The notes beneath the pieces were generated by a model. It was not told where the DNA came from and ran no database searches. It saw nothing but the letters and a program-made list of their open reading frames with translations. Shown here in pieces: positions 21,601 to 45,000 of a stretch of 64,000 bases of DNA. Origin of the DNA: Caecitellus pseudoparvulus (taxonomy: Eukaryota; Protista; Bigyra: Bicosoecida); contig CBFFRQ010000069.1 in assembly GCA_965644315.1 (NCBI GenBank), forward strand, positions 744,001 through 808,000. The letters run 5' to 3'. Numbering within the stretch: position 1 is the first letter of the stretch; each line of letters opens with the position of its first letter. A program made the position numbers and the translations under genes.

Positions 21601-24600
21601 CGTCCTGCATGTGGTTCAGCGCTGCCCCCACGACGCCCTTGAAGTTTGCCCACAGCTTGTGGCGCATGGGCGGCGTGGGCACAAGCGTCTGCATCAGCAG
21701 CGTGGACAGCCAAGACTGCACGACCGGTTGCCAGCCCAGGTCCTCTGGAGTCATGTACACGACGCCCAGGCGCGACACAGTCGCAGGGGAGGCTTGTTGT
21801 AGGTCTTGCACTTCGAAGAGCATGCGCATGCTTGGCTTAAGCTTGACACGCTCGCCGTTGGCGAGGTACAGCATCATGTTGTCATCCAGCACCGTGTTCA
21901 TGTTCTCGATCCACAGCGCGTCAATGGGGCCGTCAAACACAGTCCAGTGCTCAGCCTGGCTCTCAGAGGACACCACGGCGCGCATGATGGAGGCAGCCAA
22001 GCCATCGCTCCAGTCCTGTGTCAGCTCGTCGTACTTGCCGTACAGCTCCCCCATACTGATGGACTTGGGGTTCAGCTGCTTCACCTTCACAATGCTCCAC
22101 TCATCCCAGCGCGGGCCACTACCTTCACCTGTCAGGGCGTCCACTTCTCCGGCTTGCCCCCGAGGCGGCTTCACCAGCGACGTCGGCGGGGGCCCGCGCA
22201 TGGCAGGCCAGTTGGCCTCTGCCGCGTTCACACGGGTGATGGCCTTGGCCAGCGTGCTGTACGCAGTGGTCTTGCCAGAGGGAGGTCCCACGAGGGCCAC
22301 GCCGAAGCGCACCTTGAGTGTTTCCCGCAGCTGCACCACCTTGCGCACAAAGCGCTCCCTGGGCTGGCGACCGTCCTCCACCAACTGGTACTGGATGGCT
22401 TCTTTCAGCGCTTCTTCTTGGGCGTCAGGCACCTCTACGCCTGGGAACAGGTCTCCAACGATGGCATGGAAGAGCGGCAGGTCAGCTGCCAGGAACTTGG
22501 GCACATTGCTGTCCCGCATGGCGCGGATGAGGACGACGTCCTCGGGGAGCTCCGGGTTGCCACGCTTCAATGCGCCCGCCATGACCAGCACAGACTTCAC
22601 GGCACGCATGCCAAAGTCGTAGTGGCGCTGCTGTGACAGCTGCTCGGACGACAGCTTGTACAGCTTCACCATCTTCCGGGACAGGTTGGGCGCCGCGTCA
22701 AAGCCCTCTGCAAAGAGAATGATCTCCGCGATGAGGGCGTAGTCCGGCACCATCATGGCCACGGGGCGGAAGAACACCTTGAGGTTGTCGGGCAGCTCTG
22801 TGCGCCCCGCGTATCCAGGGTTCATCGTGGGAATGATCATGTGGGGCCGCAGAGTCATGGGCTCCCCCCCATTGAAGCTGAGGGTGGCAGCGCCGCTGAG
22901 GCGCGCAGTGCGCAGCTCCAGTAGCAGCTGAGCGATGACAGACAGCACTTCAATGTCGATGCGGTTGAACTCATCCAGCACACTCCACGCAGCGGACTGG
23001 GCGAGGCCAGAGAAGAGCTTTGCCATGTTGGCGTACGTGATCTGTTCGGAGCAATTCAGCACGATGCACTGAATGCCCAGGGCCTTGGCCAGGTCCTTGG
23101 AGGACTCCGTCTTCCCAGTGCCTGCAGGCCCCTGAGGGTTGGCGCCCAGCGCCAGGCGGAAGGCGCCAGTGATGGTCATCCAGCACCTGTCTGTGAGCGG
23201 CGTGATGACCAGGCGAGACGTTGCGCCCTCATACTCGAACTGGTAGTCCAGGTCAGTGTCGCTCTGGCGCACAATGCACGTGGAGTGTGTCGCACTCGCA
23301 TCGGTCTTGCCCCAGTAGAACCTGAGTTGCTGCTTCCAGGAGAAGGAGCTGATGGCTCGCACGTCTTCCTTCACCAACTGCATGACGATGTCACGGTTGT
23401 GCACCTCGGTAGTAAGCAGAGACACGACAATTTTGCGCTGCAACTTCGTCAGGGGGCCCCGCACGAGGGCGGTGAGGCCCTCCAACCCTCGCACTTGGGT
23501 GCAATACCACGCGGCTAGGGCCAGGCGGGGGTCAGTTGGGATGATGCGCATGGACGCCTCGGCGTCCGCCTCCGCGACGGACGCCTCATCTGTCGCCAAG
23601 CCAAGCACAGCGGACACCTCGGGCAGCAGGTCCATGTTGGAGGGGATGCCACCCACGCCAGCCAGCTGGGCCGCCTTGTTTGACTCCAGCACCGTGGCTG
23701 CCAGACCCACGGGGAGGTCCTGCCCAGCAGTCAGCTCAGCGGCTGCCTGGATGGCAGCCTCTGTGCCTTGCGTGAAGCGGATCTGGGCCGCTGCACAGAC
23801 GGCCTGTGCTGGGAGGGGCAAGCTCTCTGCGCCGCCAGCGCCCTGCACAGCCCACTCAGCACGCGCAGCGGAGAAGTCCCGGGCCAGTTTCACCTCCCAT
23901 GAGGCCTCCTCCTCCACTGCAGCTTCCGTTGCGCGCCCGCGGCGCCCTCTGCGACCACGGCGCCGCCTGCGCCCCTCGTCCTTTCCCCGCAACTTGCGCT
24001 GCAGGGTGCCCATCTCCAGATTGGACAGCAGTTCATGGGCGGAGGTCAGGTCTGAGAGGGTGGGGTAGGCGACGAGGGCATCTGAGAAGGCCTTGCGCAC
24101 TGCCGCTCGCATGGCGCCTTCGAGGGCTTCCAGCCACACTTCGGGGGCATCGCGGGCTTTCAAGTTGGGGCCAAGGGGCACGACCTCCCCTTCCGACGAC
24201 TCCATGGCCAGGACATCGTAGCCGGCGCCCAGCGCTTCGTGAAAGTGCAGCTTCGCAATGTTGTCGAAGAGCTTCAGCAGGTGCTGCACGACGGCTCGAG
24301 GGTTGGTCGAGGCAGCGGCGAGGATGTGCAGCAAGTCACCGTCCGAGAGGAAGTAGAAGCGGGGAAAGGCCCGGCGCTTCGACTCCATGTACGAGTCCAG
24401 CCCGCGCTGCACGAACTCCAGGCGCTCGATGTACCGCGCCAAGTCCTTTGCAAGGCCAGGCGTCTTCTCGCACATGCGCCGGGCGTTGGGCGTCTGGTTC
24501 ACTTTCCGGGTGAGCTCTCGGAAGTCCCCATCTACCTTCTTGAAAGTTGTGTACTCTGTGTTCAGGTTGCGCTGGATGTCCTGCGCCATGAAAATGGGGA

Positions 24601-27600
24601 AGAGGGTCATCCATGACTTCTGGCAGGCAGCCCACACTTCGATGACCGTCTGCAGCTCCGCCAAGGCATCGTACAGGGGCTGCACCTGCGTCTTGATGGG
24701 CTTCACGTAGCGGGACGACATGATGGTGTGCAGCATAACGAACGACTCGTCTAGGTTGGTTTGAATGTCATCCCACCCCGTGAGGATGAAGGCAGACCGC
24801 GGTGCGTACTTGAAGGGCTGGGTGGTGAAGGTGACGTCCTCCCACCGCGCCTCCAGTGTGCGCAGCATCTGTAGCAGGATGCGCTCCTGAGTGGCTTCAG
24901 ATGCCACACGAGAGAGCTCCCCAGCCTTGCTCACGACGCCCATGTCCACCAGCTCCCGCAATGTCAGGGCCGTTGCCGCCTGCAAGTCTTGGCCAAACGT
25001 CGTGGTGAGCTGGGCCCAGTGGCGCTCTTCCAGCGCCTCACACCGCAGATCAGCCACGACGGGGATGAGCAGGCGGAAGTGGTTCACCGAGGCCTTGAAT
25101 GCCTCCAACACACCGGTGTCTGCCAGGGCGTCAGCTGCAGCGCGCTCCACTGCAATGGCTGTGCGTACAAACGAAGTGACGACCTCCCCGAAGTCAGCCG
25201 GGTCCAGCGCCCAAACGACACTGTCCAGCAGCTCTTCCCGCTTGGCGTTCCAGTCTGCCACGCCCTGCCACAGCTTCAACTTTGTCCCCACGTCCCGCTC
25301 TAGGTGGTCCAAGGATTCGAAGGGAGTCACTGACAGCTTCAGCGTGCGCTGGTACCGCTGGTACTCGGCTGCTTGCTGCTGCATGGCGGCCACATTGGCG
25401 GCCAAGTCTGTCAGGAATGCAACTGCCTCGGCAGGGTCAGCTTCAGCGTCATACACGATGGGTGCGTCAGCAGTGGTGCGGGTCTCGTTCACCATGGACC
25501 GCAACTTGGGCACCTTCAGGTCCAGCTCCCGTGCGTACAGGCCATTGTTTGCCTCTGCACTGCCCTCCACCTCGTGCATGCGGGTGCGCAGTCGGCTGTA
25601 CTTCTCCTGCATGACCTTCAGCTCCATGGTGGCTTGGTCAGACAGCAGTTGCCCGGATGGGTCTTCCTTCTGCAGGAGGATGAAGAGCTCTGCTACGTAG
25701 GCCTCCCGCTCCCGCCACACGTCCAAGCGGTCAGTCGCCTCACCCCACGCTTCCATGAGGGCCACGTACTGGGATACGTCCTTGACCCCGCGGCCCATCT
25801 TGGCTTCGCTCACGCTCAGCTGAGCCAAAAGCACCTCGTTGCGGTCTTGGGCGATGGGCGGCAGGAGCTCCAGCAGAGTGCTGCAGCACTGCTGTGGCGT
25901 CGGCTGCAAGGCGGCCTTGAGGCCAGAGCTGTCCAGGCGCAGCAGCCCGACGAATTTGTCGGCGGGCATGAGAGCGAGGCGGGCCTCCTGCCGCGCGTGC
26001 TTGGCCAGCATGCGCTGCAGGGTGTGGGGTGTCAGCCCATCCACAGTGTGCCGCATCAGGTGCTGCAGAATGCGCAGGTTGCTGCGTGCTGTCAGGCGGA
26101 ATGGCTGCAGCACGCGGCACGCGTCCCTGGCCTGCTCGAAGGCCGCTTCCAGGCTCTCCAGGATGTCATCACTGACTCGCTGGAACTCTGGGGTCCGCAA
26201 GATGAGGGACTCGACGTCCAGGGAGCCCGGCCGCGGCACTCCCACACCCTCGCCCCCCTCTGGTGATTCGTCGCGCGTCACAGTGTGCAGCGGCTCGAAC
26301 ACTTCGTGGTACACGAGGCGAGTGGAGGAGGCGGAGATGGCTTTCACGGCGGCGGCAATGACCCCTTCCACGCTCTGCTTGAAAGAGGCTGTGCGAGGGT
26401 GGAAGAGTAAGCCAGTGGTGCTGGAGGTGCCTGGCCCGCCCGGCAAGTTGCGCCGCCTCACGGGCAGGTGCTTGGTGAGGAAGTCAGGCACCTCACCCGG
26501 CGTGAACTGGGGCTTGGTATCTTTAGCACGGGGAGATGTGGCGGCCCCAGGCCGGGGGCGGGGCGAGGAAGCCCTTGGCGACCGCTGGCCAGCCTTGGCA
26601 GTGGCAGCCGCGGCCCCTTCCTCCTCTGGCGGAGTCACTGTCAAGGTTGACGGCAGCGTGTATCCAGCTGCCAGCAAGGCTGCCGCCTCCTCTTCGTCAT
26701 CCGACGCCTCTGCGTCATACTCCCTGAGCCACGGCTGGCGCTCCAGCTTGCCTTGCCGCCGGCGGTCCCTGCGCCTCATTTGCTCCGGCGTCTCGGACAT
26801 GAAATCCCGCCGGTGAGGAGGCTTGGCCTGCGCATCCTCGTCGTGGGCGAACTCCCCCATGCCCAAGTCCGCATGCACCTCTACCATGAACAAGGCATGC
26901 ACGTCTGCCACCTCGTCGGCACTGGCGCTGTACCCTCGCGCCGTTGTCAGGGCCTTCAGGCGATACTCAGCAGTGTACCTCTCAGGCAGCATGACGTCCC
27001 GCAGAGCACCCGCACTGCGCACTCCCAGAGACTGCAGAGCATCCAGCATGAGGAAGTCACATGTGCGAACAAAGCGCAGGAGGTGCCGGCTCATCCGGCG
27101 AATGGCAGCCTGTTCGGAGTACGTGATGTGGTGCTGACCGGACAGGCCAGCGACGTCCACGCCGCCTGTGGCGGACTCCACATCCAGCACTGGGACTCGT
27201 TTACCTGCCCTAACGGCAGCAGTGGCTGCTGCCGACGCTTGGCGCCTGGCAGTGGCGGTGGCTTGGTGAGCTGCCCCTGCCGCACCGGGCACCACTCCCG
27301 GCACGGCGGTGCCCGTGCCGTACAGCGTCAGGTCTGCCGAGACACTGTACGGCGCGATGGCGGGGGATGTTCCCCCCGACACAGCGCCTGTGAAGCCGTG
27401 CTCTGTCAGGAAGTCCCGCATGGCCAGGTCACAGGCCCGACGCACCAGCGTGCGCACTTCGTGCGTGAACGTCTGCAGTTCCTCGCTGATGGCGGCACGG
27501 CAGCGCTCCTGTTGAGACACAAACTCTGACAAGGCATAGGTTGTGTTGGGGTCGATGTTGAACAGGTTCATCTTGCTCAGCTTTGTGTCGATCTTCTTCT

Positions 27601-28636
27601 TCAAGGTCTTGAGACAAGCCGACGTGGCCGGCTGCACGATGAACAGGCGCTGCTTGACTCGCTTGCGGGCGGCACGAAGCTTCCGCTGTCTTAGCAGCTT
27701 TGACCACGCCTTGAAGATGCGCCACTTCTTGTACTTCTGGAAGAAAGGCAGCTGCGAGAGCGGGGGGGAGCGGGCGTTGGTGTCGCGGCGACATCGAAAC
27801 GCTCGCAGGCCAGCGCCACGCACTGTCAGGATCGTGTGGAAGAGGAAATACTCCCGCTCAAACTCATCAATAGTCAAGTACTCAATGGTGCCGTCTGGGT
27901 GTGAGAAGGTCAGGCCTGCAGCACTCAGGGTGATGCAGGAGGCTGAGTCCACGGACAAGGGGTCAGCCACCTCCAAGTCGTACATGGAGCCAGCCTTGGG
28001 CTGCAAGTACACAAAGGAGTTGCCTTCCAGGTGGCTGATGTGAAAACTGGGATCCTGTTGCAGGACTTCCATGAACGACGGCAGCGTATGAGCCGCTGCT
28101 TGCTTAGCAGTCAGCAGGGTTGCCTTGCCAACCTTGCCGGGGGCGTTTCCTGCGCCAAACGCCGCACTGCTTGACGGCGGAGAGGGCACCTTGCGCTCCG
28201 CCGCGCCGCCCGCGGAAGCTGCATGCACAGCTGTACCATCCTGTGTACGCAGCCGCCCTCTTCGAGTGGAATGCGTGACTGACGGCGCCTGGGCGCTGTC
28301 TGGGATGGACGCCGGCGGGGCGGTTGGTCGCCGCGAAAGCCCTAAGTAAGACATGCTGGGCGAGGTCATTTTCTTCCCCCGCATGCTGAATGGCAGTGGT
28401 CTCCGCGGGGTCAGCTCATCACCTGGGGCCATTTTCACCTTGCTCATGTTCAAACGAGGCACGGACACGCCCAAAGACGCGGAGCTGGAGCCTGACTCGG
28501 CGGCGCCTGGCTTGCGAGCCGACAGTTGCAGGCGTGACTGCAATGCGCTGCGCTGGGCTGCGTGTGCTCGCCGGTCCTCCTCAGCCCATTCCTCCACAGG
28601 GCCGGGTCGGGGAGAAGAGGGGAACGGCGCAGCCAT
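12650..28636 (-). CDS. Axonemal inner-arm dynein heavy chain (single-headed, DNAH6-like)
   Basis: 5328-codon ORF with FPRFYFLSDGDLL, AAA1 GPAGTGKTESSKDLAKALG and LDEFNRIDIEVLSVIAQ, LSQQRHYDFGMRAVKSVL, AAA3 GSTGTGKS, AAA4 GVSGSGKASL, a stalk coiled coil, RWPLMIDPQGQ, WVLLQNCHL, HINYGGRVTDDWDRR and a C-terminal YKTLARAGTLSTTG. One probable in-frame intron at 27752-27823. Confidence 0.95.
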   Translation of the reverse strand: MAAPFPSSPRPGPVEEWAEEDRRAHAAQRSALQSRLQLSARKPGAAESGSSSASLGVSVPRLNMSKVKMAPGDELTPRRPLPFSMRGKKMTSPSMSYLGLSRRPTAPPASIPDSAQAPSVTHSTRRGRLRTQDGTAVHAASAGGAAERKVPSPPSSSAAFGAGNAPGKVGKATLLTAKQAAAHTLPSFMEVLQQDPSFHISHLEGNSFVYLQPKAGSMYDLEVADPLSVDSASCITLSAAGLTFSHPDGTIEYLTIDEFEREYFLFHTILTVRGAGLRAFRCRRDTNARSPPLSQLPFFQKYKKWRIFKAWSKLLRQRKLRAARKRVKQRLFIVQPATSACLKTLKKKIDTKLSKMNLFNIDPNTTYALSEFVSQQERCRAAISEELQTFTHEVRTLVRRACDLAMRDFLTEHGFTGAVSGGTSPAIAPYSVSADLTLYGTGTAVPGVVPGAAGAAHQATATARRQASAAATAAVRAGKRVPVLDVESATGGVDVAGLSGQHHITYSEQAAIRRMSRHLLRFVRTCDFLMLDALQSLGVRSAGALRDVMLPERYTAEYRLKALTTARGYSASADEVADVHALFMVEVHADLGMGEFAHDEDAQAKPPHRRDFMSETPEQMRRRDRRRQGKLERQPWLREYDAEASDDEEEAAALLAAGYTLPSTLTVTPPEEEGAAAATAKAGQRSPRASSPRPRPGAATSPRAKDTKPQFTPGEVPDFLTKHLPVRRRNLPGGPGTSSTTGLLFHPRTASFKQSVEGVIAAAVKAISASSTRLVYHEVFEPLHTVTRDESPEGGEGVGVPRPGSLDVESLILRTPEFQRVSDDILESLEAAFEQARDACRVLQPFRLTARSNLRILQHLMRHTVDGLTPHTLQRMLAKHARQEARLALMPADKFVGLLRLDSSGLKAALQPTPQQCCSTLLELLPPIAQDRNEVLLAQLSVSEAKMGRGVKDVSQYVALMEAWGEATDRLDVWREREAYVAELFILLQKEDPSGQLLSDQATMELKVMQEKYSRLRTRMHEVEGSAEANNGLYARELDLKVPKLRSMVNETRTTADAPIVYDAEADPAEAVAFLTDLAANVAAMQQQAAEYQRYQRTLKLSVTPFESLDHLERDVGTKLKLWQGVADWNAKREELLDSVVWALDPADFGEVVTSFVRTAIAVERAAADALADTGVLEAFKASVNHFRLLIPVVADLRCEALEERHWAQLTTTFGQDLQAATALTLRELVDMGVVSKAGELSRVASEATQERILLQMLRTLEARWEDVTFTTQPFKYAPRSAFILTGWDDIQTNLDESFVMLHTIMSSRYVKPIKTQVQPLYDALAELQTVIEVWAACQKSWMTLFPIFMAQDIQRNLNTEYTTFKKVDGDFRELTRKVNQTPNARRMCEKTPGLAKDLARYIERLEFVQRGLDSYMESKRRAFPRFYFLSDGDLLHILAAASTNPRAVVQHLLKLFDNIAKLHFHEALGAGYDVLAMESSEGEVVPLGPNLKARDAPEVWLEALEGAMRAAVRKAFSDALVAYPTLSDLTSAHELLSNLEMGTLQRKLRGKDEGRRRRRGRRGRRGRATEAAVEEEASWEVKLARDFSAARAEWAVQGAGGAESLPLPAQAVCAAAQIRFTQGTEAAIQAAAELTAGQDLPVGLAATVLESNKAAQLAGVGGIPSNMDLLPEVSAVLGLATDEASVAEADAEASMRIIPTDPRLALAAWYCTQVRGLEGLTALVRGPLTKLQRKIVVSLLTTEVHNRDIVMQLVKEDVRAISSFSWKQQLRFYWGKTDASATHSTCIVRQSDTDLDYQFEYEGATSRLVITPLTDRCWMTITGAFRLALGANPQGPAGTGKTESSKDLAKALGIQCIVLNCSEQITYANMAKLFSGLAQSAAWSVLDEFNRIDIEVLSVIAQLLLELRTARLSGAATLSFNGGEPMTLRPHMIIPTMNPGYAGRTELPDNLKVFFRPVAMMVPDYALIAEIILFAEGFDAAPNLSRKMVKLYKLSSEQLSQQRHYDFGMRAVKSVLVMAGALKRGNPELPEDVVLIRAMRDSNVPKFLAADLPLFHAIVGDLFPGVEVPDAQEEALKEAIQYQLVEDGRQPRERFVRKVVQLRETLKVRFGVALVGPPSGKTTAYSTLAKAITRVNAAEANWPAMRGPPPTSLVKPPRGQAGEVDALTGEGSGPRWDEWSIVKVKQLNPKSISMGELYGKYDELTQDWSDGLAASIMRAVVSSESQAEHWTVFDGPIDALWIENMNTVLDDNMMLYLANGERVKLKPSMRMLFEVQDLQQASPATVSRLGVVYMTPEDLGWQPVVQSWLSTLLMQTLVPTPPMRHKLWANFKGVVGAALNHMQDGVDHQPVSVSHLSLVTSLCSLVEIMLTALRRAGVPIPDDEQPAVKLVDRVFLWAFVWSFGATATADTWRGFDVFTRGVMKKAGVDLSGLPGTGTVFDCYISTQPPALAQGGVEHGGTFRMWRELVPHFNFEPGLPFHSIIVPTVDTTRYAHVLNYLLLSPRINMDKTESLRQLLPVIARYQAEHHHWKAETARLEEERAAAAELAGLPPPGSAPAARGRRATRPNMKVSVSKASLSSKGAQPDAPRQAVHVDSGRKVVHPWLLPWEEQALRLLTKGAFDPADPSSADQDVPFLPGVVGDWAFDFSWMGINAGGGPLGVAVAPLTMRPVFLTGSTGTGKSVLLSSLLREAAGQDVKVGDDEESSAVAVAVPQAPAAGGASAAAAPSEGKGDDAASVRSWDSQSTVSEASVEGKEEDEAAAAAAAEARAAAAAAEAQSKASALAKAHQGSLLGESAGRHTVPITAIPLTFSAQTSSGGVQAQVQGKLERKRKGRFGAPEGRRAVVFVDDVNMPKPEEYGAQPPIELLRQLADYGGWYDRTSLHWNHLQDTALVVAGAPPGGGRRELSERFMRHCSVLCLPTAGPDVMSAMFSAIVSGFLGTKFSAEVRAAAGSIVSSTIHVYFRCSSELKPTPSKSHYVFNLRDVSRVVQGLLMTSPQQCRSASDVARLWVHEACRVFADRLTTEDDLEWLQGVVVSQLNKSFRLPWTVEGLFGEEATLGAATGRAARAAERAESLEGVGGEAPTSVGGVGPLLFGDWLHPGSDVPAYEDCKNPHKLPALMDGYMEEYNLSSPAPLHLVFFEDAISHVARICRVLAMPRGSALLVGVSGSGKASLTRLAAFISGCDCVSPDMSGSAGQESFREDLKDLLLSAGVEGTPSVLLMGDAQIVNEAILEDLNCLLNSGEIPGLFAQEDQDAIVSRLAEKLDKGAPAPSPDGNMPAGAGGGDPEASGPALPSSPADIERAFIARVRANLHVVLSMSPVGAQLRTRLRQFPSLLNCCTIDWFMPWPRAALISVGERLLAPLTLPSPAEIGGRVGQDGDHAVHMPAPAHPLWHHVVLACVDLHSAVDTFIPQFAAATKRQVYNTPRSYLDLLAAYNRLLGKKYAEERGTLDRLQNGIRTLDNTVEAVTTLQARLGEMQPVLKQRAEETAALVTKVQAEQKVVAGEREKVDAEADIVLSQQQQVEALQAEAQAELDIAMPAMLAAQEAVKQVDPAKLTILRSFNNPPAQIVTLMEAVCVLFEEKPGWDNGKRLMQGVAAGNVHGNFLKDLELYDTRRVTSKMLRKVATYTRLPAMQPSAMETVSSAALSICNWVHAVEKFVLVQQEVAPKERRVAEMNAQLAIANEALQEKQSQLAGVVARVEALQALCAEKQAEKARLESEEARARAQLQRAEKLLSGMASAGARWRVSVKERASTLGQVVGDVLLAAAHVVYSGPFTGEFRGGMQAAWAAAVDSHKLPRSATFSLPDVLATPVEVNNWMISGLPKDDTSIANGLLVTRAQRWPLMIDPQGQGKNWVRTMAGEALEVVDMVSGHAEAKAGVGEAAEPESPRAGGTASSAMLKAHAGRPMNLAQTLEKCVRLGLPLLLEECGTKLPPVMAHVLARTVVRDGAEASIRVGDRLIPYDGNFRLYMCTSEPNPHFLPDTSIRVSLVNFTVTSRGLEEQLLSQAVAKERPDLESTSSQLLMDIAGDRKQLQALEDSVLAQIAEAGEDILDNTALIANLSAAQTKASRVEQRVQATEATAAIVSAARDTYRLLAQRGSLLYSVVTMLASVDPMYQYSLQYFTRLFDLCLTDPSVHGAEAVAAAAAARDAASRGKGAGRPASAASAASGASKRKGAKPASSRKVAASGASTGGHSDASSEAGASAAINVAALTQGIPGLSADGLERRVAEQVDRLSAIVYDNIQRGLFEKDKLLLSLLLACRLLQTSGQVSRREVGLLLRGAGVMNRDEQPLNPSLRYDPDDFLGGEGAMPLTEDEVAALRNPLPPAGWDLICKLTEEVPEFAFLQNHVRDNYHEWALWRLSPAPHEAKLPDDIEGHLSTLQKLLLVKAFAPDKLVFGLGGLVRDTLGEAYLTPAGVSLAQVFTETSPVTPCVFVLSQGADPTQRLLEFAARKGMSARLQVIALGQGQGERAARLIERAAVEGDWVLLQNCHLAKSWLPDLARLLDRHRKAPDALNAEFRLWLTSFPAPYFPASILQHGIKITNEPPKGIRANMQRSFGVLIKPHRLAAFDLPPPRSPRGSRARMPPGSGSRRSLTGDSDASDAGSSEGKEDGKHLRRAGSSKASLKGSKADLSMGLADDGGPTNFMGMAWRRLCVGLSFFHALVQERRKFGALGWNIRYEFSDSDLDTSLQTLQNLLQGAALAAGETASLDALPEYDSEEEGQEGAGDGEPPTPSARADRKFIGSSAVAASPQELYRALQASSEDGTPLPWDALTYVVGHINYGGRVTDDWDRRTLLALLKAVLTPKAVTSTEFLLSDSGKYFIPKDVTASGIAEYLSTLPARDETEVFGMHPNADAAFRLSESDYLLRTALDTGLASQKSGGAAPPSPARRKGRAPGTSTAPTPLGAAAGEGKDSTGSLPPASADAADTEVLRLLNDLGSRVPAPLDVAAVARKVRESTVAAPRAGRSRHRAHHSRRASSAASSGPVRSRRMSAVLLKPAQMAALREGSASRSGAASRVGSQEGRYSSMGASSAASGASAAATATDMAGPAEADALPPNSLLVVLQQEATKFNLLLSTMRESMMALRKVLLGEAAMSDALEAMYAALVHGRVPAVWADVAYPSMRPLASWIADLNRRVQFMDRWIGMGDMREYWLPAFFFPQGFLTAVLQRHARKYQVAINDLEFEFAFYTAAGVVHAGERPGDPRPRAPADDGVMVNGLWLESGQWNDEVQGLADPVPGEVYSALPRMRMLPALKHTTAPGAFVCPVYKTLARAGTLSTTGISTNYVVSVELPSQMPSEHWIWRGTALVLDVMNED

Positions 28637-33222: not shown

Positions 33223-34417
33223 TCATTTGGGTGAAACAAAGAGGGAGTCTGTGCGCATGCGGTCCGTCGCAGCCACGAGGCCGTCAATGAGACCCGGCTC
33301 CGAGTCACTGTGCCCCGCGTCAAACACGAACTGCAGAGTGGAGTGCGGCAGGCGCTTGTGCAGCTCCAGAGCGGCGCGTGGGCGGCAGACGATGTCCTGG
33401 CGCCCGTGCACGATGGCGGTGGGGATGTGCTCGATCCTGTCTGTGTGGCGCAGCAGCCAGGGGAGGTTGCCGTCCAGGCTGCCTGGGCCGATGTTCTGCA
33501 CAGGCGGCTTGGCCGGCGCGAACGTGGGCGGCGCGCCTGCTTTGTCGGACGCAGAGCCGTCCTCCTCATCTGGGCCAGGAAAGAAGCAGGCGTGTTTGAA
33601 GTACCACGTCTCAGCCCGGGCAAAGGGCAGGACGAAGGCGTCGTCCTTCAGCAGCTCTTCCAGGGCAGCGGCAGGCGCCTGCTTCAGGGTGGAAATGGAC
33701 ACCTCCCACCGCACGAATTCACGGGCAGCCGGCAGGGCCACCGCGAGGTCTTCCGAATTCACCCGGGTGCAGTAGGCCGCCAGCAGGGAGTGCCGCTCAC
33801 AGGCTGGGATGTGCCCCGCGTACGCTTCCCACGCGTCTGGGTACATCTCAGAGGCTCCGCCCTGTTCAAACAGCCACGCCATGCTGTCCCCATCGCCCAC
33901 GAACACGCCGCGCAGGACCAAGCTGCCGACGCGGTCAGGGTGGCACACAGCGTACGACAGGGACAGGCAGCTGCCCCAGGAGCCGCCCATGACCACGTGC
34001 CACTTATCCACGCCCAAGTGCTCACGCAGCTTCTCCAGGTCTTCCACCAAGTGCCACGTGGTGTTGTCCTGCATGAGGCCGTTGGGCTTGCTGCGGTTCG
34101 CGCCGCGCTGGTCGTAGAGGACGATTTTGTAGAAGTCAGGGTCAGCGTACCGGCGCATGCGGGGGGAGCAGCCAGCGCCAGGACCGCCGTGGTTCAGCAC
34201 GATGGCTGGCCCGGCAGCGTTACCGCACACTTCATAGTACAGCTCATGCTTGTCAGAGACCTTCAGATATCCGGTCTCGAATGGCTCACATGCAGGGTCT
34301 GTACATGCGCGCGTGCACGCCGCGTGAGGCACTGCTTGCTGCATTGGCGTGGTGCGGAAAAAGCCACGCACACAGCTCGCGTCGGGCGGCACTCGTCTCA
34401 GAGCTGGCAGCGGCCAT
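33223..34417 (-). CDS. pip: Proline iminopeptidase (peptidase S33, alpha/beta hydrolase)
   Basis: Splicing gives MAAASSETSAARREL|YPACEPFETGYLKVSDKHELYYE. Motifs: HGGPGAG, YDQRGANRS, GGSWGS (nucleophile Ser), HGRQDIVC (Asp) and DAGHS (His). Confidence 0.95.
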
Positions 34418-34866
34418 GGTGGGCGTGGGAGGCACGGATGTATCTGCATGTTTCAGTCGGCGGGAGTGAGTAGCTGCGCTTGCCCCGGCTTTGACGTGGG
34501 GTGCCACGCACCGCTGACGAGTTGAGGTTGGCCCAACTGCTCCAAAACCTGGCTGAGAAGCAGAAGCCGAAGCACTTGGGGTGCAACAAGTCCGTCGAAA
34601 ATACTTGGTTCAGATGGATGTGCCGCCAGGTCATGCGAAGGTTTGTTGTTTTGGCTAGCTAGTAGCTACTGCTGCGTGCGCCTCGCACGGCCAGCATCGC
34701 ATAGCTGCGAGGAAGACACACCGCGGCGCCACATTCCAATACCCGAACCATCTCGTTCGCGCCCGCTCATGCGCTGGCATGCGAGAGGTTGAGGAAAGCC
34801 TCGAGCGCCCCGCGGCAGTGGACGGCGAGACGGTGATCACGCTCCCTGTTGTGAGAGCCCAGCAAC
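34418..34866. promoter_or_regulatory. Probable bidirectional promoter region (pip / SET-cyclin-CDK fusion)
   Basis: About 450 nt separate the divergent start codons. Inferred from gene layout only. Confidence 0.4.
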
Positions 34867-37800
34867 ATGGCGACCAGCGTCGTGCTTGACGCGGCGCAGC
34901 ACAAGCGGCGACTGTTGTCCGAGAGCGCGCAGTATGAGACAGTGACTGAGCTGATTTACACAGCCCGCGACCGCAAGGCCTTGACACAGGAGCAGGCAGA
35001 GGAGATGAGCTGTGCCTGTAAGCTGCAGGAGGGTGAAGGGCCCATTTGCTGCTCTGAGCAGTGTGTGAACTTCTCCAGCCGGACAGAGTGCCCCCTAGGA
35101 ACCTGCAGCAAGAAGCGGTGCTGCAACAAGCGGTTTCAGCGCCAGGCGTGGGCAAACGTGGAGAAGTTCGCCGTCCGTTGCATGCGTGTGGTCCAGCTCA
35201 AAAACCGCACTTCCGCACAAGCGCCCTCCTTTGCCCTTGCAGACGGATGACAAGGGCCACGGCGTGCGGACGCTGCAAGAACTGAAGAAAGGGGACTTCA
35301 TCATGGAGTATGTTGGGGAGGTGATCTCGGAGGAGGAGTACAAGGCGCGCATGACCCAATACTTTGCTCAGGTGAGGCAGCGGGCCTGCCCCAAGCAGCA
35401 TTGCGGCGCTCAGCACTGGCACCCTCCCCATCGCACAGGGCCGCATGCACTTCTACATGATGTCTCTAGGGGCAGGGGAGTACATCGATGCTGCCTTGCG
35501 TGGCAATGCCATGCGCTTCTTGAACCACTCCTGCTCATCCAACGTGCAGACGGAGGTGTGGCAGGTGGGGCCAGAGGAGCGCGTGGGCGTCTTTGCCACG
35601 GCAGACATCCCGGCAGGCACCGAGCTGACGCTGGACTACCAGTGGCAACGTGTGGGGCACAACCGCGTCCCGTGTCGTTGTGGTGCCCCCAATTGCCGTG
35701 CCTTCCTCGGCGCCACAGAGGAGGGCTTGCAGGCCAGTGTCCCCCTAGCCGTGCCCCCGGGCCCATTCGTGGCCCCCACCGCTGCTGTGAAGCAGGCAGG
35801 GCACGGCTTGGACGACTGCTTCCTGCAGGTTTGGCTGCCCCTTGCAGCTGCCGAGGCGTACCAAGCGGGCAGCAACAGGCGAGAGTGCCTGCTGCCTGGT
35901 CTGCAAGACATGACCCCTGCCGGCGCGACATGGGCTGCTTTGGCCTCTGCTGCCACCCCTCCACCACCGGCGCCCCAAGGCGCCCCTCACGAGGGCTTCC
36001 ATGCCGGCGGAGGAGGCATGGGGGGGTGGTTCCTTGGGAAGGTCCTGGCCTTCGACGAGGTGGCTGGAACCCACCGCGTGCAGGTGCTGGCTAGCCAGCG
36101 GTGGGTGACCCTGCACCTGCAGGGGGGCGTGTCACCGTCCACGGCCGCCACCGATGCGACATGGCCCTGGCTGTTGTTGGACTCACCCGCTGCAGCGGTG
36201 CGGGTGGCAGCCACGGCACCCGTGACCTCTGCCGCAGATGAGCCGGCCCCTGCCGATTTGGCAACACCCGCTGGGGAGGAAGCTGGGTCTGGCCCAGCAG
36301 GGGAGGGCCAGAGTGCCACGCACCAAGCCGTGGGCAGTGCTTCAGCCCTGCAGGCCTGGTCGGGGGGCTCTCGCAGCCTGGATGCTGCGGCACTGGCTGA
36401 CTCGGCTGTGCGCATGAGTGAGTGGCATGCCTCCCAGGCCGCCCAAGCCGCCCAGGCAGCGGAGCAGGCCCAAGAAGAGAGGCTGCGGGCCGAGGTGGCT
36501 GCACAAGCCCTGCAGCAGCGCCTGCACATGTCCGCTTCGGCGCTGGACGGGGAGGGGGACGTAACCATTGGTGGCGGCTACAGCAGCAGGGACGCCTTCG
36601 CAGCATATGCTCAGCAGCAAGCGGCTGAGCAAGCCGCCGCTGCGGCAGATGCCGCCGTTGCCGCCCAAGAGGCTGAGGCTGCCGCCGCAGCCGCCCGCAA
36701 GCGCAAGCGGGAGCAACGCCGACAGGAGAAGAAACAGGAGGCGTCACAGCGCAAGGCCGACCGCAAAGTGATGAAGGCGGCCGCACGGGCGGCGCGCAAA
36801 GCGGGGGCTGGCGCAGTGCGCTCTGCCACCCTGACTGCCGTGGGCAGCAAGTCCAAACCCAAGTTTAGGCCCGCGCCTGGCACGCTACTCCCTCTGCCCG
36901 TCTCTGTGGAAGACTTGGAGGCGAACGAAGGGCGCCTGCCAGATATCATGGCAGACCACAACGAAGACGCAGCCATGCCTGCCTTTGGCCTCAGCGCGCC
37001 CTTTGTGCCAAGCTGGCGCATGACGTTGGCGGAAGCGGTGAACAGCACCCCAGCGAGGGCCAGCGGCCTGGGGCCCGCAGAGGAGCAGCGACTGCGCCGG
37101 GCGTGCATTGCTCTGACCATTCGGGCCGGGGCTGCAGCCCGTGCGCCACTGCCGCTCCTCTTGCACGCCGCAGTGCTGGTGGTGAGGGGGACCAGCTTGC
37201 GCTCGCCGGCGGGACTTCAGCCGCGAGCAACTGCAGCGGCAGCTCTGCACTTCGCAGGCGCCGCATCACACCAGCACGCCTTGGGCAAGGCTGCAGCTGC
37301 GTGGCACGCAGCGCGGGCAGCTCTGCGTGCCAGCACACCTGAGGGGCAGTGGGGGCCGCTATGGGAGTGCGCAGTGGAGGCCACCACCCCCGTGTCCCCT
37401 GGGCAGGCAGTGCAGTCAGCAGTGCACTTCGCAGCGGAAGTGGGCAGGGTGAGCACCGCCCAGCAGGCCCTGTCCTTGGCCCTGCGCCTTGACACGGGCT
37501 GCGCTGACCTGAGCCACCTCCTCGTTACCGGATTGGCTTCGGCAGTGGACAGGCCAGCCCTACAGTCTGCGTTGCAGAGTGCCACAGAGGCTTCAGCGCT
37601 CAAGCACATGGCTGCTGCAGCCTTGCTCATGCTGGAAGGCCAAGGTGGCATTGCAGCCGCTGTGGCGTCCAGTCTGGGCGGGCAGGCTGTGGACTCTGTT
37701 TCTGCCTTGCTCGGCGTCCCGCTGCCCGCCGGCGCGAAGCAAGCATACACCGTGGCTGCCAAGTCCGGGGACTGGGCGCCCCTGGCATCTTTCGTGCAAG

Positions 37801-40607
37801 AAGTGGCAAACGCAGACGCTTGGGCAGGTGGGCTGCAGCTTGGCGTTTTCGAGGCTATCCTAAGCATGGCTGTGCACGTGTGCGGGTTGGCCGACCTGGC
37901 TGTGGCGCCCCACAACTTCATGCTGCACACTCCACCAGCTTGGGCTGTTGGCGTCGCCTACTGCACCCTGGCGCACCTGCAGAGCATGGCAGGGCTGGCC
38001 CAGGACACACTGCCTTGGACGGCCCCCTTTCCTTCAGAGCCGCAGTTCATGTGGCTGGCGCCAGTGGGAGGCATGCCGCCTGCAACCGCTCTGTACCCGT
38101 GCACCAACAAGCGGGCGGCTGCAGCAGCCACTTCAGCGGCAAGGAAAGCTGCCCGCTCGCCGCAGTGCGTGGCAGTGAAGGCGCCTGCAAAGCCGGATCG
38201 GGTGGGCGGCCTGTCCAAGGCACGGGAAGCACTGGCTTCCGCCCCCCAGCGAGTGGACGTCCTCGACGCTGCCTGGGCGGCAGCCACCATCGCTGCCACA
38301 TTCATGCGCACAGATGGCCTGCCGGGTGGTTCGTCTCCGAACCTTGGCGTGTCGGCAGTGACTTTGGCGGTTGCCGCGCCGGGGGGCTCGTCAGACCTGC
38401 TGGCACAACCGCCCCAGGAGTGGGGTGTCGAGCCTGGCGCGCTACCCACAGCACCAGCGCTGGCGGCGGCTGCGCGACGCATGTTGGAGGAGGCACTGGG
38501 CGGCGAGGAGCCTGACGGCGACCCCTTCGCGCAGGCCTTGGAGGCAGCATGCCAACGCCCAGGCCTACCACGCTCCGACGATGGCCAGGCCCAGACGTTC
38601 CTCACCAGGGCAGCGGATCCCCTGGCGGCGCCACGCACTGCTCGTGAGTTCCACTTCCTTGATCAGCTGGCGCCTGGGTGGTTTGTCGCCCGGGACTTGC
38701 GGTTTGGCCACAGCACCTTGCTAGGCGATGCACCCGGCTCCTCTGCAGCCCCTGCGCGGTCCCGTCTGGTCCTGCTTCAGCAGCTCCCTCGCTCGCCAGC
38801 ACCAGCTCAGGCTACCGAGTCTGTGGCAGACGCCGACTCAGCTGCAGCTGAGCCCGACCAGCTGCTTGAAGCAGCGAGCCCTCCAGGAGGTATGCCGCGC
38901 CTTTCGGATAGCGAAGCTGCTGCCACGACGATAATGGGCGACCAAGCGGCGGCCTTCGCACAGCTGAAGGCCGCACACGGCTTTTTGGGCGAGATGGTGA
39001 AGGGCGACGCCGCACCGCAGATGGCAGCCCACCCGCTGCAGACCGCCAGCATGACTGCACCCAGCGCCAAGCGCCCTCGTGGGGAGGGCGAGGTAGGCTC
39101 ACCCCAGTGGGCTGTGCCCCCCGGCGCGTCGCTGCGTGATGCCAGCTCAGAAGGCGTCACTGCTATCGCAGGGTGTGGCGTGGGCACTGTGCCAGCCCTG
39201 CGTCGCAACCCACATGTGTCTGCTCCTCTGGAGCTGGTGCTCGGGCGTGGTCTCGTTGAAGCAGTGGGCGGACACGGCCCAGGGAGTGGCGTACAGGCGC
39301 CCCCGCCCAGTCTCCAAGCCTTCTTCGCTGCGCCGCAGTCGCAAGGTGGGGCTGCAGGGCAACTCATCGCTGGACTAGGCCAAGCAGAGCTTCAAGAGGA
39401 CTCGTACCTCGTGTACGAATACTCGGCACACACCCTTGCAGGGCTGGCTGCTGCGCGTGTGCACCTAAGCTTGGGACAGCTGCAGCGTGTGGGGTACCAG
39501 TTGCTGCGGGGCGTCGTGCGCTTGCATCAGCAGGGACTGCTGTTTGGTTGTTTGAGTCCGGATGCAGTGGGGCTCACCCGGGATGGGCTGGTGAAGGCGC
39601 TGCCTCCGCAGGGCATGCTGTGGGATTGGGATGTCAAGACGCAGCAAGGCTTGATGAAGGAGGTGGCTGGAGGTGCCACCCGCGCTGGGCGCGACGCCCT
39701 CAGCCGTCTGCCTGAGCCAGGACAAGGCGTGCAGCCAGATTTGTTGCCGCCCCACGCCCTACAGTGCTTGGCACCAGAGCTGCTGCTCGGGTGCAGTATG
39801 CCCTTCCCGTCATCGGACGCATGGAGTGTGGGGTGCACTTTGGCTGCCATGGCGTTGGGGCGCCCCCTCTTCCCCGGCAACACCGCCCAAGAGGTGTTGG
39901 AGTCCATCTCGGTGTTGGTAGGGCCTGTCCTCAAGCGCTGGCCTGCGGCCAAGTACTTGCCACTCTCCAAGCTAGCCTCGGTGGCACACCAGGCGCGCAC
40001 AGCGGCCAAAGCTTCAGCTCCGTCCGGCGCCCTGCCCCGGCTAGAAGAGACCCTGCGCAGCGCTGGCATGCCCAAGGCGCTCGTCAAATTACTGCGTGAG
40101 CTGTTGAACTTGGACCCCACTGCCCGTCCGGATGCGCGCAGTGCCCTGGCCGGCGCCTTCTTCAAGGAGTTCGTGCCGTTGGCCCAGCCAGCCCTTGCGC
40201 GGTGGGAGGGCGACGTTGGCACTCACATCGCAGGCACGGTGCTGCTGCCAGGCAGCCGATCTGAGAGCTTGATCACACCCACTACCTTCCGGGCGTCGTT
40301 GCCCTACTCGAAAGCAGAGTTCCCTGATGTCCCTCCACACAACGAAGGTGGGGAGGTTCCGCCTGATGCACCCCCCGTAGCACTTGCTGGGGCAGAGGGC
40401 GTCCCCAAGGGGGTCGGGGATGTGGACCCCTTTCCGTACTTGAGACCATGCCTGCTGAACCGTGGCGATCCGCTGGCGGTGGCAGCCGCACGCAGCGCGG
40501 AAGCAGCCGCTGCGGCGCTGCCCACCGCCCAATCTGGCTCTGGAGGTGCAGCTGCGGCTGCGGTGACGGACGCCCCTTTTGTTGCTTTCTCTGCTTTCAG
40601 GGGGTGA
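34867..40607 (+). CDS. Multidomain fusion: AWS-SET-postSET (Set2/ASH1-type histone methyltransferase), Tudor-like domain, cyclin T/K-like region and CDK9/12-like pseudokinase
   Basis: Three exons (introns 35173-35242 and 35372-35438). The last exon is one uninterrupted 1720-codon ORF. AWS Cys cluster; SET motifs KGHGVRT..FIMEYVGEVI..YIDA..GNAMRFLNHSC..ELTLDY; postSET CRCGAPNCRAFLG; cyclin-like WRMT..NSTPARASGL..EEQRLRR; kinase-like YLVYEYSAHTLAGL..APELLLG..DAWSVGC..PLFPGN..LLNLDPTARP. Confidence 0.85.
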
Positions 40608-40637: not shown

Positions 40638-41818
40638 TCACCGGGCTTCGCCTGCTGCTGCGGCATACTTGGCAGCGATGCTGTCCACCAGGGCCAGCTC
40701 TGCTTGAGCCGTGGCCAGCTCTTCCTGAGCAGCCTCGAGCCCGAACTTCGTCTGGCCACCCTTCACAGCAGCGAACTCGTTGACGATGTCAGTCAGCATC
40801 AGCACGCGGGTGCGAAGCTCGTCGTGCCCGTCCTCTGCATCCCATCCGTTCTCCGCCACCCATTGCTCCTCCTCAGGCGTCAACTCGACACTCGCTCCAC
40901 CTGCAAAGGTGCCAGCGGATCCCTGCTCCAGCAGATCTCCAACTTCCGCGGCAGTCAACTCGCCACGTTGATAGGCGGCAAGACGCAGCTTGGCGTCCAG
41001 GCCCTCGGGCGTGTCCTTCAGAGTCCACGAGCGCTTGGCCTTGGCCTTCAAGCCTTTGTAGCGCGGGTCAGTGGGGAAGCCAGGCTGTGTGTAGAATGCC
41101 TCTTCGTTGGGTGCAGAGGCAGCAGCGCCGCCTTGCAGCCCGTTGCCGAGGCCGAAACCTCGGGGCCGGTGGTGTGAGAGGTTCGGCGTGTGCACGAAAT
41201 CCTTGGCCATGTGGCCCAAGTTGCGCTCGTACGTAGCATCGGTGTGTTGCAGAAGCTGGGCTGGCTTGTACTTGTGCGTATCACCAGCGGTGGTCTGGGG
41301 AGGAAGCAGGGCAGCGCCGCGTGCCAGGGGGCCCAGTCAGGTGACCCCCGCCGTCAGCGCGCAGGCTGGCGTCTCGCACCACTCACGGCAGTTGGGGGCG
41401 TGTCTGTGGTGTGGTGCAGCCACAGGTGCCACTCTGCTGGCACGATGCTGGGATCAGCCTCGTAAAATGACGGGTTGCCAGCCAGCTCAACCCAGCGGTG
41501 TTGCCCTGCACAGCACCAGTGAGCGGGGTGTGGCCCTGGTGCCTCACAGGGCATGCTAGCTTCAGCGACTCACCGTGGGGGTAGTCCTTTGTGTTCTCAA
41601 AGTACTTGTTCCCCAGTGAATCCACGCCTGCGCAAGCCAGCGAGCGAGCAAGGCTCGTGCACCAGCAGCACAATTCCGCACCTGCCCCTCACTGCGTGCC
41701 GGCTGGGGGACTCACCAATGAGCGTTCCGAACTTGAGAGTTCGCTGCTGGTACAGCTTCCAGAAGGTACCCACCACACCGAACTCCTTGAAGGCACGAAG
41801 GAAGTTGCCGTGAGACAT
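40638..41818 (-). CDS. NDUFA12: Complex I accessory subunit NDUFA12 (B17.2) with a long C-terminal extension, 4 exons
   Basis: The spliced product reads ...KFGTLIG|VDSLGNKYFENTKDYPH|GQHRWVELAG..VPAEWHLWLHHTTDTPP. It continues in frame through a GTGAGT..CCCAG intron into HTPNLSHHRPRG... and on to the stop at 40638. Confidence 0.9.
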
Positions 41819-42052: not shown

Positions 42053-45000
42053 TCACTCGCCCTTGAGAAGGCGCTGAAGGGCATCAAAGCCACCCTGAGC
42101 AAGGCCTTCCTGGGAGCTGCGCACCGCCAGTCGGGCGCCGTTGAAGCCCTCCTTGAGCTTCAGCTCCACGAGCATGTCGCCAGCATCACCACCCTCGGGT
42201 GCGAGGGTCTTGGCCGAGGCCAGCATGGTGAGCATGCCGTCCCCCAGCTCCCGCTGGCCAAGCACCTTCACGTTGGCAGCATTCAAGGTACTGCTGACTG
42301 TCGAAGCGTCGGCGGACGCGAGGCCTCGCACGGTGGCCTCGACATTGCTGGCTTCTGCAGCGGCCCACGCCGCTTGGAAGCCACCACCCCCAACGCCGCC
42401 ACCGGGCACCAAGATCGCCTCCACACGCAGGGGGACCTTAAAGATGAACTGCACGCGGGAGGTGTTGTCTCGCAGGGCGACGTCCAGTGTCGCTGACAGC
42501 GGGAAGCCGGTGGCGCGCTCAGCTTTCGGGACAAGGTCAACGAGCACCGAGCCGCTCGCGCCCGAGGCCACACCGCCGAAAGAAGCGGTGGGCAGGCTGG
42601 GCGACAGGCCAAAGGTGTTCTTGTTGACAGCAACGGCCACCTTGTCAACGGAGGAGCTTTGCGTGTTGTGGATGCCAATGGCCAGGGTGGCGCCGGTGCC
42701 AACGCTGCCTGGGACGATGCCGGCGTGGATGCGCAGGCCGTTGGCGTCGCTAACCACGGGCATGGTGAGCGGGTCCACGGCACCAGGGGCTGCAGGTGGC
42801 GAGGCAGCGGCGGAGCCGCCGACAGAAGCTGTGGGGGCGCCCATGATGCCCAGAATGTCATCGTCATCCTCCTCAGCAGCTGCAGCACCGCCCCCGCTCG
42901 GCGAGCCGCCGTCTTCTTCGTAGTACAGCTCTTCCTCGTCGTCATCCTCTTCTTCCTCAAACGTGCCTGCATCCCGGCGCTTCACGAAGGAGTCAGGCGG
43001 CTTGTGGAAGACACTGGCCAAGGAGGACAGGTTGGAGATGAGCTCGCCCAGCAGCTCCCTCCCGAAGACGTTCGTGTCATCGTGGATGACGGGCTTCTCA
43101 GCCAACACGACTGCCTTGGCGGCATCCCGATCAGCGGTCAGGAGGCGCCAGTAGATGTACCCACGGTCGCGCAGGTCTGGGTTGTCAGACTCCTCGGCTG
43201 CCATGGCAAGGACTGCTTCGACCAAATCCTCTGCCTCGGGGTTGACGAGGAACAGCTTCACGACGGCGGTGAGCAGGGCCAGCTGCACCTGCGCCGGCTC
43301 GTCGTGGAAGCCATCCACGAACGCATCCAGCAAGTCATCAGCGTTCTCAATGCGAGCAGCGTACTCGCCAATGATCCAAATCATGCTGGCCTTGGCTTCT
43401 GGCTCATCCAGGCTCTCCAAGTTGTCACAAAGGGCGGAGATGACAGCCTCATACCGGTTGGGGTACTTGCGGAAGATGTCCTTGATGACGACGATGGCCT
43501 CCTGCACGACGTAGTTCACCTTGGTGTCAATGAGCGTCAGCAGCACCTGCAGGCACTTCTCAGCTGCCTTCTCCAGCTTAATGGCGCAGCGGCCGATGGT
43601 GCGGACTGCGCGGCGCACGTACTCCACGTCAACCTGCGTGGCGTACTCTTTCAGCTCTGACAGGACGTTCTCCACGTTGCGGTCGTTGACCAGCTGCACG
43701 AGGATCTCCAACTTCTCCATCTTCACGTAGATGGGGTCGTTGTACTTGCAGAAGAAGACCTTGATCTTGTTCGTGAGCAGGAAGGGCTCCTTCTGCACGA
43801 CCAGGCTGATGTTGCGCAGCGCGACGTACTGGATCTCAGGCTGCGGGCTCTGAGCCAGGGTGACCAAGGGGGGCGCCAGCTTGCGGCGGTAGGAAGCCAA
43901 GGCTTCCTCCCCACCGATGCTCTCCATGTACAGCAGCACGATCTTGACGGCGCTGAGCACGACGGCGGAGTTCTGGTGAGCCAGGCGGGGCAGCACGCGC
44001 TCAATGATGGTCTCAGCCTCGCGAGCATCTGCAGGCGTGTACAGCTGCGCGAGGGCATCGAGGATGTAAACTTGCCCCCACTCTGTGCACTCGTTCAGGG
44101 CAGCCAGCAGCTTCTGCAGGGTAGTGGGCGGGATGTCGAAGATGGTGTGGCTTGGGTAACTCAGCTGAATCTCGCTGAGCGCTGCCACAGCGTTTGCCAC
44201 CACTGTGGGGTTGGGGTCATTCAGCAGCTCTTGCAGCAAGGTGAGGAAGCCGTGGTCCCGGACGAGAGAAGGGGAGATGTCGTGCAGCTTGGCAACACAG
44301 ATGGCTGCGGTCTTGCGCACGTAGGGGTCCTCATCCGACAGTGCCTTCTTCAGTGGCCCGTCCAGGTACTCGGTGATGCGCTCGACACGGATGCACCCCA
44401 TGGTTCGCACGGCCAGAGCGCGGATGAGGGGGTTGTGGTGGGAAGCGTCCTGCGCAGAGGCGCCTCCAGTGCTCCTTGCACTCGCGCCTTCGTCGTCTGG
44501 CCGCGAAGCACACACTCACCGTCACGAAGGCATTCACAGCCAAGATGGCCAAGTCAGGATTGCTCTTGGCGTAGTTGATCAGGTACAGGTACACGAGTTT
44601 CTTGACCTCCAGGTTGTCTGGAGTTTCAGGCGCAAGCGTGGCGTTTCGCCGTGAACCTTGTGCTGATGCCTGGCGGAGACGCACCCATCTTAATGCAGTT
44701 CAGGACATCCATGAATACCCCCGACATGTCCTTTCCGACTGTCAGTCCGGCAATCACCTGTGGCCGCATCGAAGCGTACAACGTGTTGGTGCAGCGCGAA
44801 GGGCCGTGAGGCAGCGTCAATACCGCTCCAGCCACCCAAGCCCGGTGAGCCCGGGGCCACCGTGCAGGGACCAGGGGCATCACTGACCTTTTTCACGGCG
44901 TCCTTCTTGACATGGAGGTCGGTGGAGGCCAGCTCCGCCTTGAGCTCCCCAACTTCCCCTGCATGAGGCAAGTGGCGTGGTGGTGGAGACGCCGTGCAGG

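Follow-up and report, generated by a model that had tools for sequence, protein, structure and literature searches.

The contacts that the histone H3 lysine 36 (H3K36) methyltransferase SETD2 normally uses are that of its SRI domain with the C-terminal domain (CTD) of RNA polymerase II (Pol II) and that with Spt6 (PMC12572195). A methyltransferase joined to a CDK-like kinase has been noted in Phytophthora, where Judelson and Ah-Fong (2010) reported that PITG_14137, a protein of 1,501 amino acids (aa), combines an N-terminal histone-lysine methyltransferase with an inactive CDK-like kinase, classed it as CMGC/CDK/CRK7 with human CHED as the best match, and described the combination as Phytophthora-only (PMC3019232). 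As published, PITG_14137 has SET and kinase domains only, with neither a cyclin nor a Tudor domain mentioned and no function given (PMC3019232). Here we analyze a gene of the bicosoecid Caecitellus pseudoparvulus that lies at positions 34867-40607 on the plus strand of a 64,000-nucleotide (nt) stretch of DNA (assembly GCA_965644315.1, contig CBFFRQ010000069.1, positions 744,001 to 808,000; hereafter the window, whose own numbering is used throughout). The gene has three exons and encodes a predicted protein of ~1,867 aa, in which an AWS-SET-postSET core is followed in turn by a Tudor-like domain, a K/T-type cyclin box in degenerate form, and a pseudokinase resembling CDK12/9. This SET-cyclin-kinase fusion is real and widely conserved.

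The fusion is contained in a single exon, as the initial annotation of this stretch had claimed. The frame at 35439-40607 is free of stops over 1,722 codons and encodes the C-terminal half of the SET domain, the post-SET motif, and the Tudor, cyclin, and kinase parts. Each exon of the spliced model was searched separately. Exon 1 (34867-35172) supplies the N-terminus, the Cys-rich AWS (pre-SET) domain, and the first SET residues; its Pfam AWS match is weak (E = 0.004), and tblastn matched the exon in five relatives (E = 6e-34 to 2e-9), with the same junction end in the closest ones. Exon 2 (35243-35371) encodes the N-terminal half of the SET domain with the GxG and EYVGE motifs (Pfam SET, E = 1.6e-5). 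The two introns on either side of it (35173-35242, 70 nt; 35372-35438, 67 nt) are both GT-AG and in phase 0. The presence of two short 5' introns, also part of the initial annotation, was borne out by the relatives, which are broken at the same two positions; for intron 1, a matching gap was found in L002, L004, L073, and L057.

The same fusion recurs well beyond C. pseudoparvulus, in close relatives, distant proteins, and diatoms, as a search for the architecture outside the source organism showed. A whole-length search returned three close homologues at 41-44% identity and the more distant P0005. When two relatives were compared over the cyclin and kinase parts, third codon positions differed at ~50% and second positions at 11-12%, which implies purifying selection on both parts. 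A cyclin-kinase profile was then searched against 1.8 billion representative sequences. P0009, P0010, and P0011 ranked directly after the close relatives and before ordinary CDKs, and P0018 and P0056 were also found. AWS, SET, Cyclin_N, and Pkinase occur in that order in P0010 and P0056, and AWS and SET exons lie upstream of the cyclin-kinase part of P0009. A search with P0056 returned ~90 proteins, mostly with SET and kinase, from sources that include Seminavis robusta, Epithemia clementina, Mayamaea pseudoterrestris, Amphora coffeaeformis, and Discostella pseudostelligera; full-length transcript products from the Marine Microbial Eukaryote Transcriptome Sequencing Project (MMETSP) are among them. 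The domain order is the same in P0002-P0005, P0009-P0011, and the ~90 diatom proteins, and near-identical proteins are present in three independent assemblies. A homologue search with P0010 retrieved ordinary Set2 proteins only, and an oomycete or brown-algal orthologue was not retrieved by sequence. PITG_14137, compared by eye only, is very probably an orthologue of the fusion protein; as far as its sequence is given in the published supplement, it resembles the fusion in its AWS-SET-postSET core, in a Tudor-like stretch after the post-SET motif, and in the LQxWP and alphaC motifs of the kinase (PMC3019232). As judged from these sequences, the family is stramenopile-wide.

The SET part appears to be a functional enzyme core. 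The third exon begins with the C-terminal half of the SET domain (NHSC and LDYQW motifs) and the post-SET CxCxxxxC (35439-35711), and the catalytic motifs, including the catalytic Tyr, and the post-SET cysteines are all kept. Exon 3 matches Pfam SET with E = 3e-13, and the top PDB match of the SET piece is SETD2 (E = 2e-27). In a family SET profile, Set2/SETD2 scored 198-195 bits, NSD1 190, ASH1L 182, and KMT2 124, with K36 enzymes at 175-198 bits compared to ≤124 bits for other SET classes; by sequence, the domain is assigned to the H3K36 methyltransferase class (KMT3: Set2/NSD/ASH1). In a tree built without NSD or ASH1 references, the fused SET domains group with SRI-bearing Set2 (91/88), apart from the PHD-bearing KMT3 of the same genome (L065). 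At the Phe/Tyr switch, 44 of 47 homologues carry Phe and three carry Leu, the residue of the window's subclade, and a SETD2-like motif follows the catalytic Tyr. Taken together, the SET domain is likely orthologous to Set2. A Pfam search of the protein gave neither an SRI nor a WW domain, consistent with the initial reading of the sequence. The genome contains further SET genes. One of them, L065 (L065:666-2138, minus strand; G000:C49), is again of the K36 type and combines an AWS-SET core, a Tyr at the switch, and a PHD finger encoded downstream, a PsKMT3-like layout. The long open frames of L063 and L064 (G000:C42 and C67) each encode an E(z)-like SET protein, which hints at a pair of catalytic paralogues of Polycomb repressive complex 2.

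The kinase part is catalytically dead. The alignment places its start near 38634, ~500 bp before the start at ~39140 proposed initially, so that the domain, with large N-lobe insertions, extends over 38634-40178. Its C-lobe matches Pfam with E = 5e-12 and Cdc2-like kinases, CDK9, and CDK12 with E = 1e-15 to 1e-12. Of the elements that define an active kinase (Gly-rich loop, catalytic Lys, alphaC Glu, HRD, and DFG), each is lost or eroded: the beta3 Lys is replaced by Gln (near 38780), HRD by FGC (39543), and DFG is absent (near 39600), while APE is retained (39771). Likewise, HRD is absent in all 53 fused kinases, and the kinase domain has no DFG. The pseudokinase status claimed from the window alone therefore holds for its protein. 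A family kinase profile built without active CDKs ranked CDK12/13 first (176 bits), compared to ~152 bits for CDK2/5/9. In a kinase tree, ten fused kinases formed one clade (Shimodaira-Hasegawa approximate likelihood ratio test, SH-aLRT, 95) that falls within the CDK9/10/11/12 group (94) and away from CDK1/2. This single clade points to a single origin, with trust limited by the long branches of what is a quick tree, which does not set the fused kinases apart from CDK10/11. A grouping outside the transcriptional CDKs, set beforehand as an outcome that speaks against the fusion as proposed, did not occur. The description of the kinase as CDK9/12-like stands as to its clade but appears to shift toward CDK12/13 and away from CDK9.

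The cyclin region (36990-37990) is degenerate, and its identity was established through homologues. Single-sequence searches of this region against the PDB, Pfam, and the ESM Atlas gave no match. By contrast, a profile of the cyclin regions of four close homologues returned cyclin T1/T2 in 13 of 13 PDB matches (best E = 0.003), and this profile also picked up P0009 (E = 8e-6) and P0010 (E = 6e-5) at the corresponding position. This assignment was further supported by an independent profile made from P0009 and P0010, which scored the window protein at 9.1 bits at the expected place, compared to a maximum of 4.2 bits in 500 shuffles. P0010 is a less eroded homologue, and its cyclin ranks nearest to cyclin K (E = 2e-5), followed by cyclins T (2e-4), C (0.05), and L (0.4). 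Pfam Cyclin_N matches P0010 (E = 1e-4), and its match to P0056 passes the Pfam cut-off. The cyclins of the window's subclade and of the diatoms match weakly in direct profile comparison (E = 0.025) and are linked via P0009 and P0010. Both the N-terminal W-x-F...P-S motif and the first cyclin box, which mark the K/T type, are present. The initial annotation placed a cyclin T/K-like region at 37014-37990; of this, the first box (~36990-37500) is supported by profiles and the K/T type is upheld, but the second box is only inferred, single-sequence searches are blank, and the cyclin looks nearer to K than to T. In cyclins A, T, and K, a Lys in helix 3 and a Glu in helix 5 grip the CDK. Both residues are kept in P0009, P0010, and every diatom row. 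A free cyclin K/T was not identified among the loci read in the genome, which exclude one weak H/T/K-type locus. Elsewhere in the genome, a 1,688-aa protein (L028:2478-7544, minus strand; G000:C62) carries an F-box-like stretch and two cyclin parts separated by a very long disordered region.

The cyclin-to-kinase segment is predicted to form one rigid unit in a diatom orthologue. An AlphaFold2 model of this segment from Epithemia (847 aa, 74 alignment rows) has a predicted local distance difference test score (pLDDT) of 84.9 and a predicted template modelling score (pTM) of 0.88, and a pTM of this size across several domains implies fixed relative domain positions. Foldseek placed CDK12 first for the kinase part of the model, and VIA gave CDK3 and CDK9 Z scores of 23-24. 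The model also contains a confident all-helical region of cyclin size, and the fold-search lists are filled by the kinase. In the diatoms, the cyclin Lys/Glu pair and the residues of the alphaC loop are invariant although the active site is dead. The initial annotation had suggested that AlphaFold be used to examine packing of the cyclin on the kinase; the diatom orthologue yields a rigid unit, but the model of the window's own cyclin is unusable, as discussed below. In the diatom proteins, the cyclin is also flanked on both sides by additional conserved beta-alpha domains (P0056:465-880; P0210, residues ~1315-1400), which have no Pfam match and are possibly KH-like.

The Tudor-like domain (35760-36179), which the initial list of domains had missed, was recognized by family alignment and profile. 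It is split by a ~60-aa insertion and corresponds to a conserved beta-rich segment found after the post-SET motif in every aligned family member. The family profile gave one significant PDB match, the Tudor domain of RDM15 (7DE9; E = 1.8e-11), and Pfam PTM_DIR17_Tudor matched weakly in 5 of 16 family members. RDM15 Tudor binds monomethylated H3 lysine 4 (H3K4me1) through W616, Y623, and Y641 together with D643 and D645 (PMC8184781). At these five positions the window protein has L, F, V, A, and a gap, and P0010 has W, F, Y, D, and D, so that the methyl-lysine cage is eroded in the window protein, with one aromatic residue left, and an equivalent cage is kept in P0010 alone. Plants have an H3K36 methyltransferase that carries an H3K4me1 reader (SDG8/ASHH2), but there the reader is a CW domain, which differs in fold from the Tudor-like domain of the fusion family. 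Between the Tudor and cyclin parts lies an Ala/Gln-rich linker (36400-36890), probably helical, which is conserved in four homologues and contains a basic stretch resembling a nuclear localization signal and a conserved basic motif. The C-terminal tail (40179-40607) carries, before the stop, a DPFP motif at 40425 that is conserved in P0002-P0005 and P0011.

By their defining features, the fusion protein is not a canonical Set2, CDK, or cyclin. It shares with Set2/SETD2 (KMT3A), its best profile matches, the AWS-SET-postSET core with intact catalytic motifs, but Set2/SETD2 has an SRI domain, whereas the fusion protein has Tudor, cyclin, and pseudokinase parts and neither SRI nor WW. The closest solved relatives of its kinase and cyclin parts are CDK12/13-cyclin K and P-TEFb (CDK9-cyclin T), which consist of two separate active subunits; in the fusion, by contrast, both are in a single chain, the cyclin precedes the kinase, the kinase is catalytically dead, and a methyltransferase is attached. 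A CDK-like kinase and a cyclin also share one polypeptide in oomycetes, ciliates, and Theileria (PMC3019232) and in large DNA viruses (ESM Atlas clusters), but none of these listed fusions has a SET domain. The oomycete examples are probably inactive, like the kinase described here, but are CDK2-like, have the kinase before the cyclin, and differ by a single Asp-to-Asn change. In ESM Atlas features, P0010:440-1170 adjoins clusters of kinase-cyclin fusions from large DNA viruses and oomycetes. A literature search, whose coverage left subscription journals largely outside, found the 2010 Phytophthora passage as the sole description, with the cyclin, the Tudor domain, and the wide range unmentioned. 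The initial view that the architecture was undescribed therefore has to be narrowed, as the union of SET and an inactive CDK was already on record (PMC3019232), but the cyclin K/T and Tudor parts seem to be undescribed, as do the occurrence of the fusion in diatoms and other lineages and the rigid module predicted for it.

The source genome is 30.6 Mb in size, with ~64% G+C in the window and few introns. An alpha/beta hydrolase gene (33223-34449, minus strand), proline iminopeptidase-like by eye, is divergently oriented ~400 bp upstream of the fusion gene. Downstream are a small gene without a Pfam match (40638-41219, minus strand), which is 65% identical in relatives and is preceded by N-terminal exons that look NDUFA12-like by eye, and an AP beta-adaptin gene (42053-44515, minus strand). 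This downstream order, with the small gene convergent and followed by AP beta-adaptin, is the same in three close relatives. The window also contains a dynein heavy chain gene whose 5,328 aa are encoded by one open frame (12650-28636, minus strand). An 18S ribosomal RNA gene of 1,697 nt lies in a tandem array elsewhere (L031:1501-3197; G000:C81).

Several other parts of the elongation pathway were located in this genome. The CTD of RPB1 (L060:1693-7008, minus strand; G000:C69) consists of 25 YSPTSPA heptads in which Ser2 and Ser5 are kept. Because the heptads are present, loss of the CTD was ruled out as a reason for the fusion. Ser7 is replaced by Ala almost throughout the repeats. An intact CDK9/12-like kinase is encoded elsewhere, as are CDK10- and CDK11-like kinases. 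An SRI domain on a SET gene was not found in the genome; the one SRI-like match (L074:1078-2112, minus strand; G000:C18; E = 0.013, below cut-off) sits on a separate contig, away from any SET match. The low-complexity protein that contains it could be a separate CTD reader. In other stramenopiles, trimethylated H3K36 (H3K36me3) is 3'-biased on active genes in the diatom P. tricornutum, in a study that does not mention a kinase (PMC10421102), and P. sojae has no SRI-bearing KMT3 and retains ~50% of its H3K36me3 after PsKMT3 knockout, by a mechanism called unclear (PMC10013772).

We infer that the dead CDK-cyclin pair assembles in cis as a scaffold that would take over the role of SRI and hold the SET domain to elongating Pol II, a reading to which we give about an even chance. 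The cyclin would fold back onto the N-lobe of the pseudokinase, as cyclin K does on CDK12. The pair would then bind a part of the elongation complex (phospho-CTD, Spt5/Spt6, or a factor that binds cyclin K/T) through surfaces inherited from CDK12/9-cyclin K/T, and would thus replace SRI. The tethered SET domain would write H3K36me3 over transcribed genes, a separate intact CDK9/12 would carry out phosphorylation, and the Tudor domain may ancestrally have read methyl-lysine of the H3K4me1 type before it eroded in the window's lineage. In its fullest form, a stramenopile Set2 that captured a dead CDK12/9-cyclin K/T pair, folded in cis, would dock on the elongation complex without SRI, an undescribed route, and would account both for the H3K36me3 left in Phytophthora once PsKMT3 is knocked out and for the mark over diatom gene bodies; this wider account we hold tentatively, at somewhat below an even chance. 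Several observations weigh against docking through a cis-assembled pair. In the window's pseudokinase the alphaC Glu is gone (near 38955), the CDK-binding Lys and Glu of the cyclin are lost in P0001-P0004, the window's subclade, and the Tudor cage is mostly lost there as well. A single-sequence AlphaFold model of the window's cyclin has a pLDDT of 45, is unusable, and gave no cyclin match by fold search; the packed model is that of a diatom orthologue, and its pTM does not locate the cyclin. The link between CDK and Set2 in known systems is catalytic, which a dead kinase cannot supply. Moreover, SETD2 leads NSD1 by just 5-8 bits, in addition to the missing NSD and ASH1 references in the SET tree, and L065 could be the main H3K36me3 writer.

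Other explanations are less probable. The enzyme may be a real H3K36 methyltransferase that its dead pair directs to sites by binding something else than elongating Pol II, such as splicing or 3'-end factors (compare CDK12/13-cyclin K and CDK11-cyclin L), sequence-specific regulators, or chromatin with the help of the Tudor domain. The proximity of the kinase to CDK12/13 in a tree that leaves CDK10/11 unseparated, the beta-alpha domains around the diatom cyclin, which could bind RNA or protein, and the resemblance of the Tudor domain to an H3K4me1 reader (PMC8184781) are consistent with such targeting. However, no SRI-bearing SET gene was found in the genome, and the elongation-like pattern of H3K36me3 in diatoms needs some link to Pol II (PMC10421102), so that we consider this explanation unlikely. 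We rate as quite improbable that the module is mainly a built-in regulator or stabilizer, which gates or stabilizes the SET domain instead of recruiting it, like the autoinhibitory domain of Set2. A long low-complexity linker separates SET from cyclin, and the fact that diatoms have retained an interface of the CDK-cyclin type points to a binding surface under conservation, even though the module looks rigid and self-contained in the diatom model and the strong erosion and long insertions tolerated in the window's subclade would fit a structural role.

The SET domain itself could be an NSD/ASH1-type H3K36me1/2 enzyme, or could act mainly on non-histone substrates (CTD lysines, elongation factors, or tubulin), while the PHD-bearing KMT3 would make the bulk of H3K36me3. 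The small score margin over NSD1, the Leu at the switch in the window's subclade, and the finding that PsKMT3 makes about half of the H3K36me3 of P. sojae (PMC10013772) agree with this assignment, but the predominance of Phe at the switch among the homologues, the SETD2-like motif after the catalytic Tyr, and the grouping with SRI-bearing Set2 make it decidedly improbable. An assembly or annotation artefact, or separate expression of the domains, has next to no probability given the single open frame of 1,722 codons, the near-identical proteins in three independent assemblies, and the same fusion in ~100 other proteins, transcript assemblies included.

The fusion family is therefore a concrete candidate for aiming H3K36me3 at transcribed genes in stramenopiles, and one that is testable in laboratory diatoms. 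If docking by the dead pair on the elongation complex is correct, the family would offer an uncommon example from nature of a pseudo-CDK that has stayed with its cyclin as a scaffold, and it would imply that the docking role of CDK12/9-cyclin K/T is separable from its kinase role.

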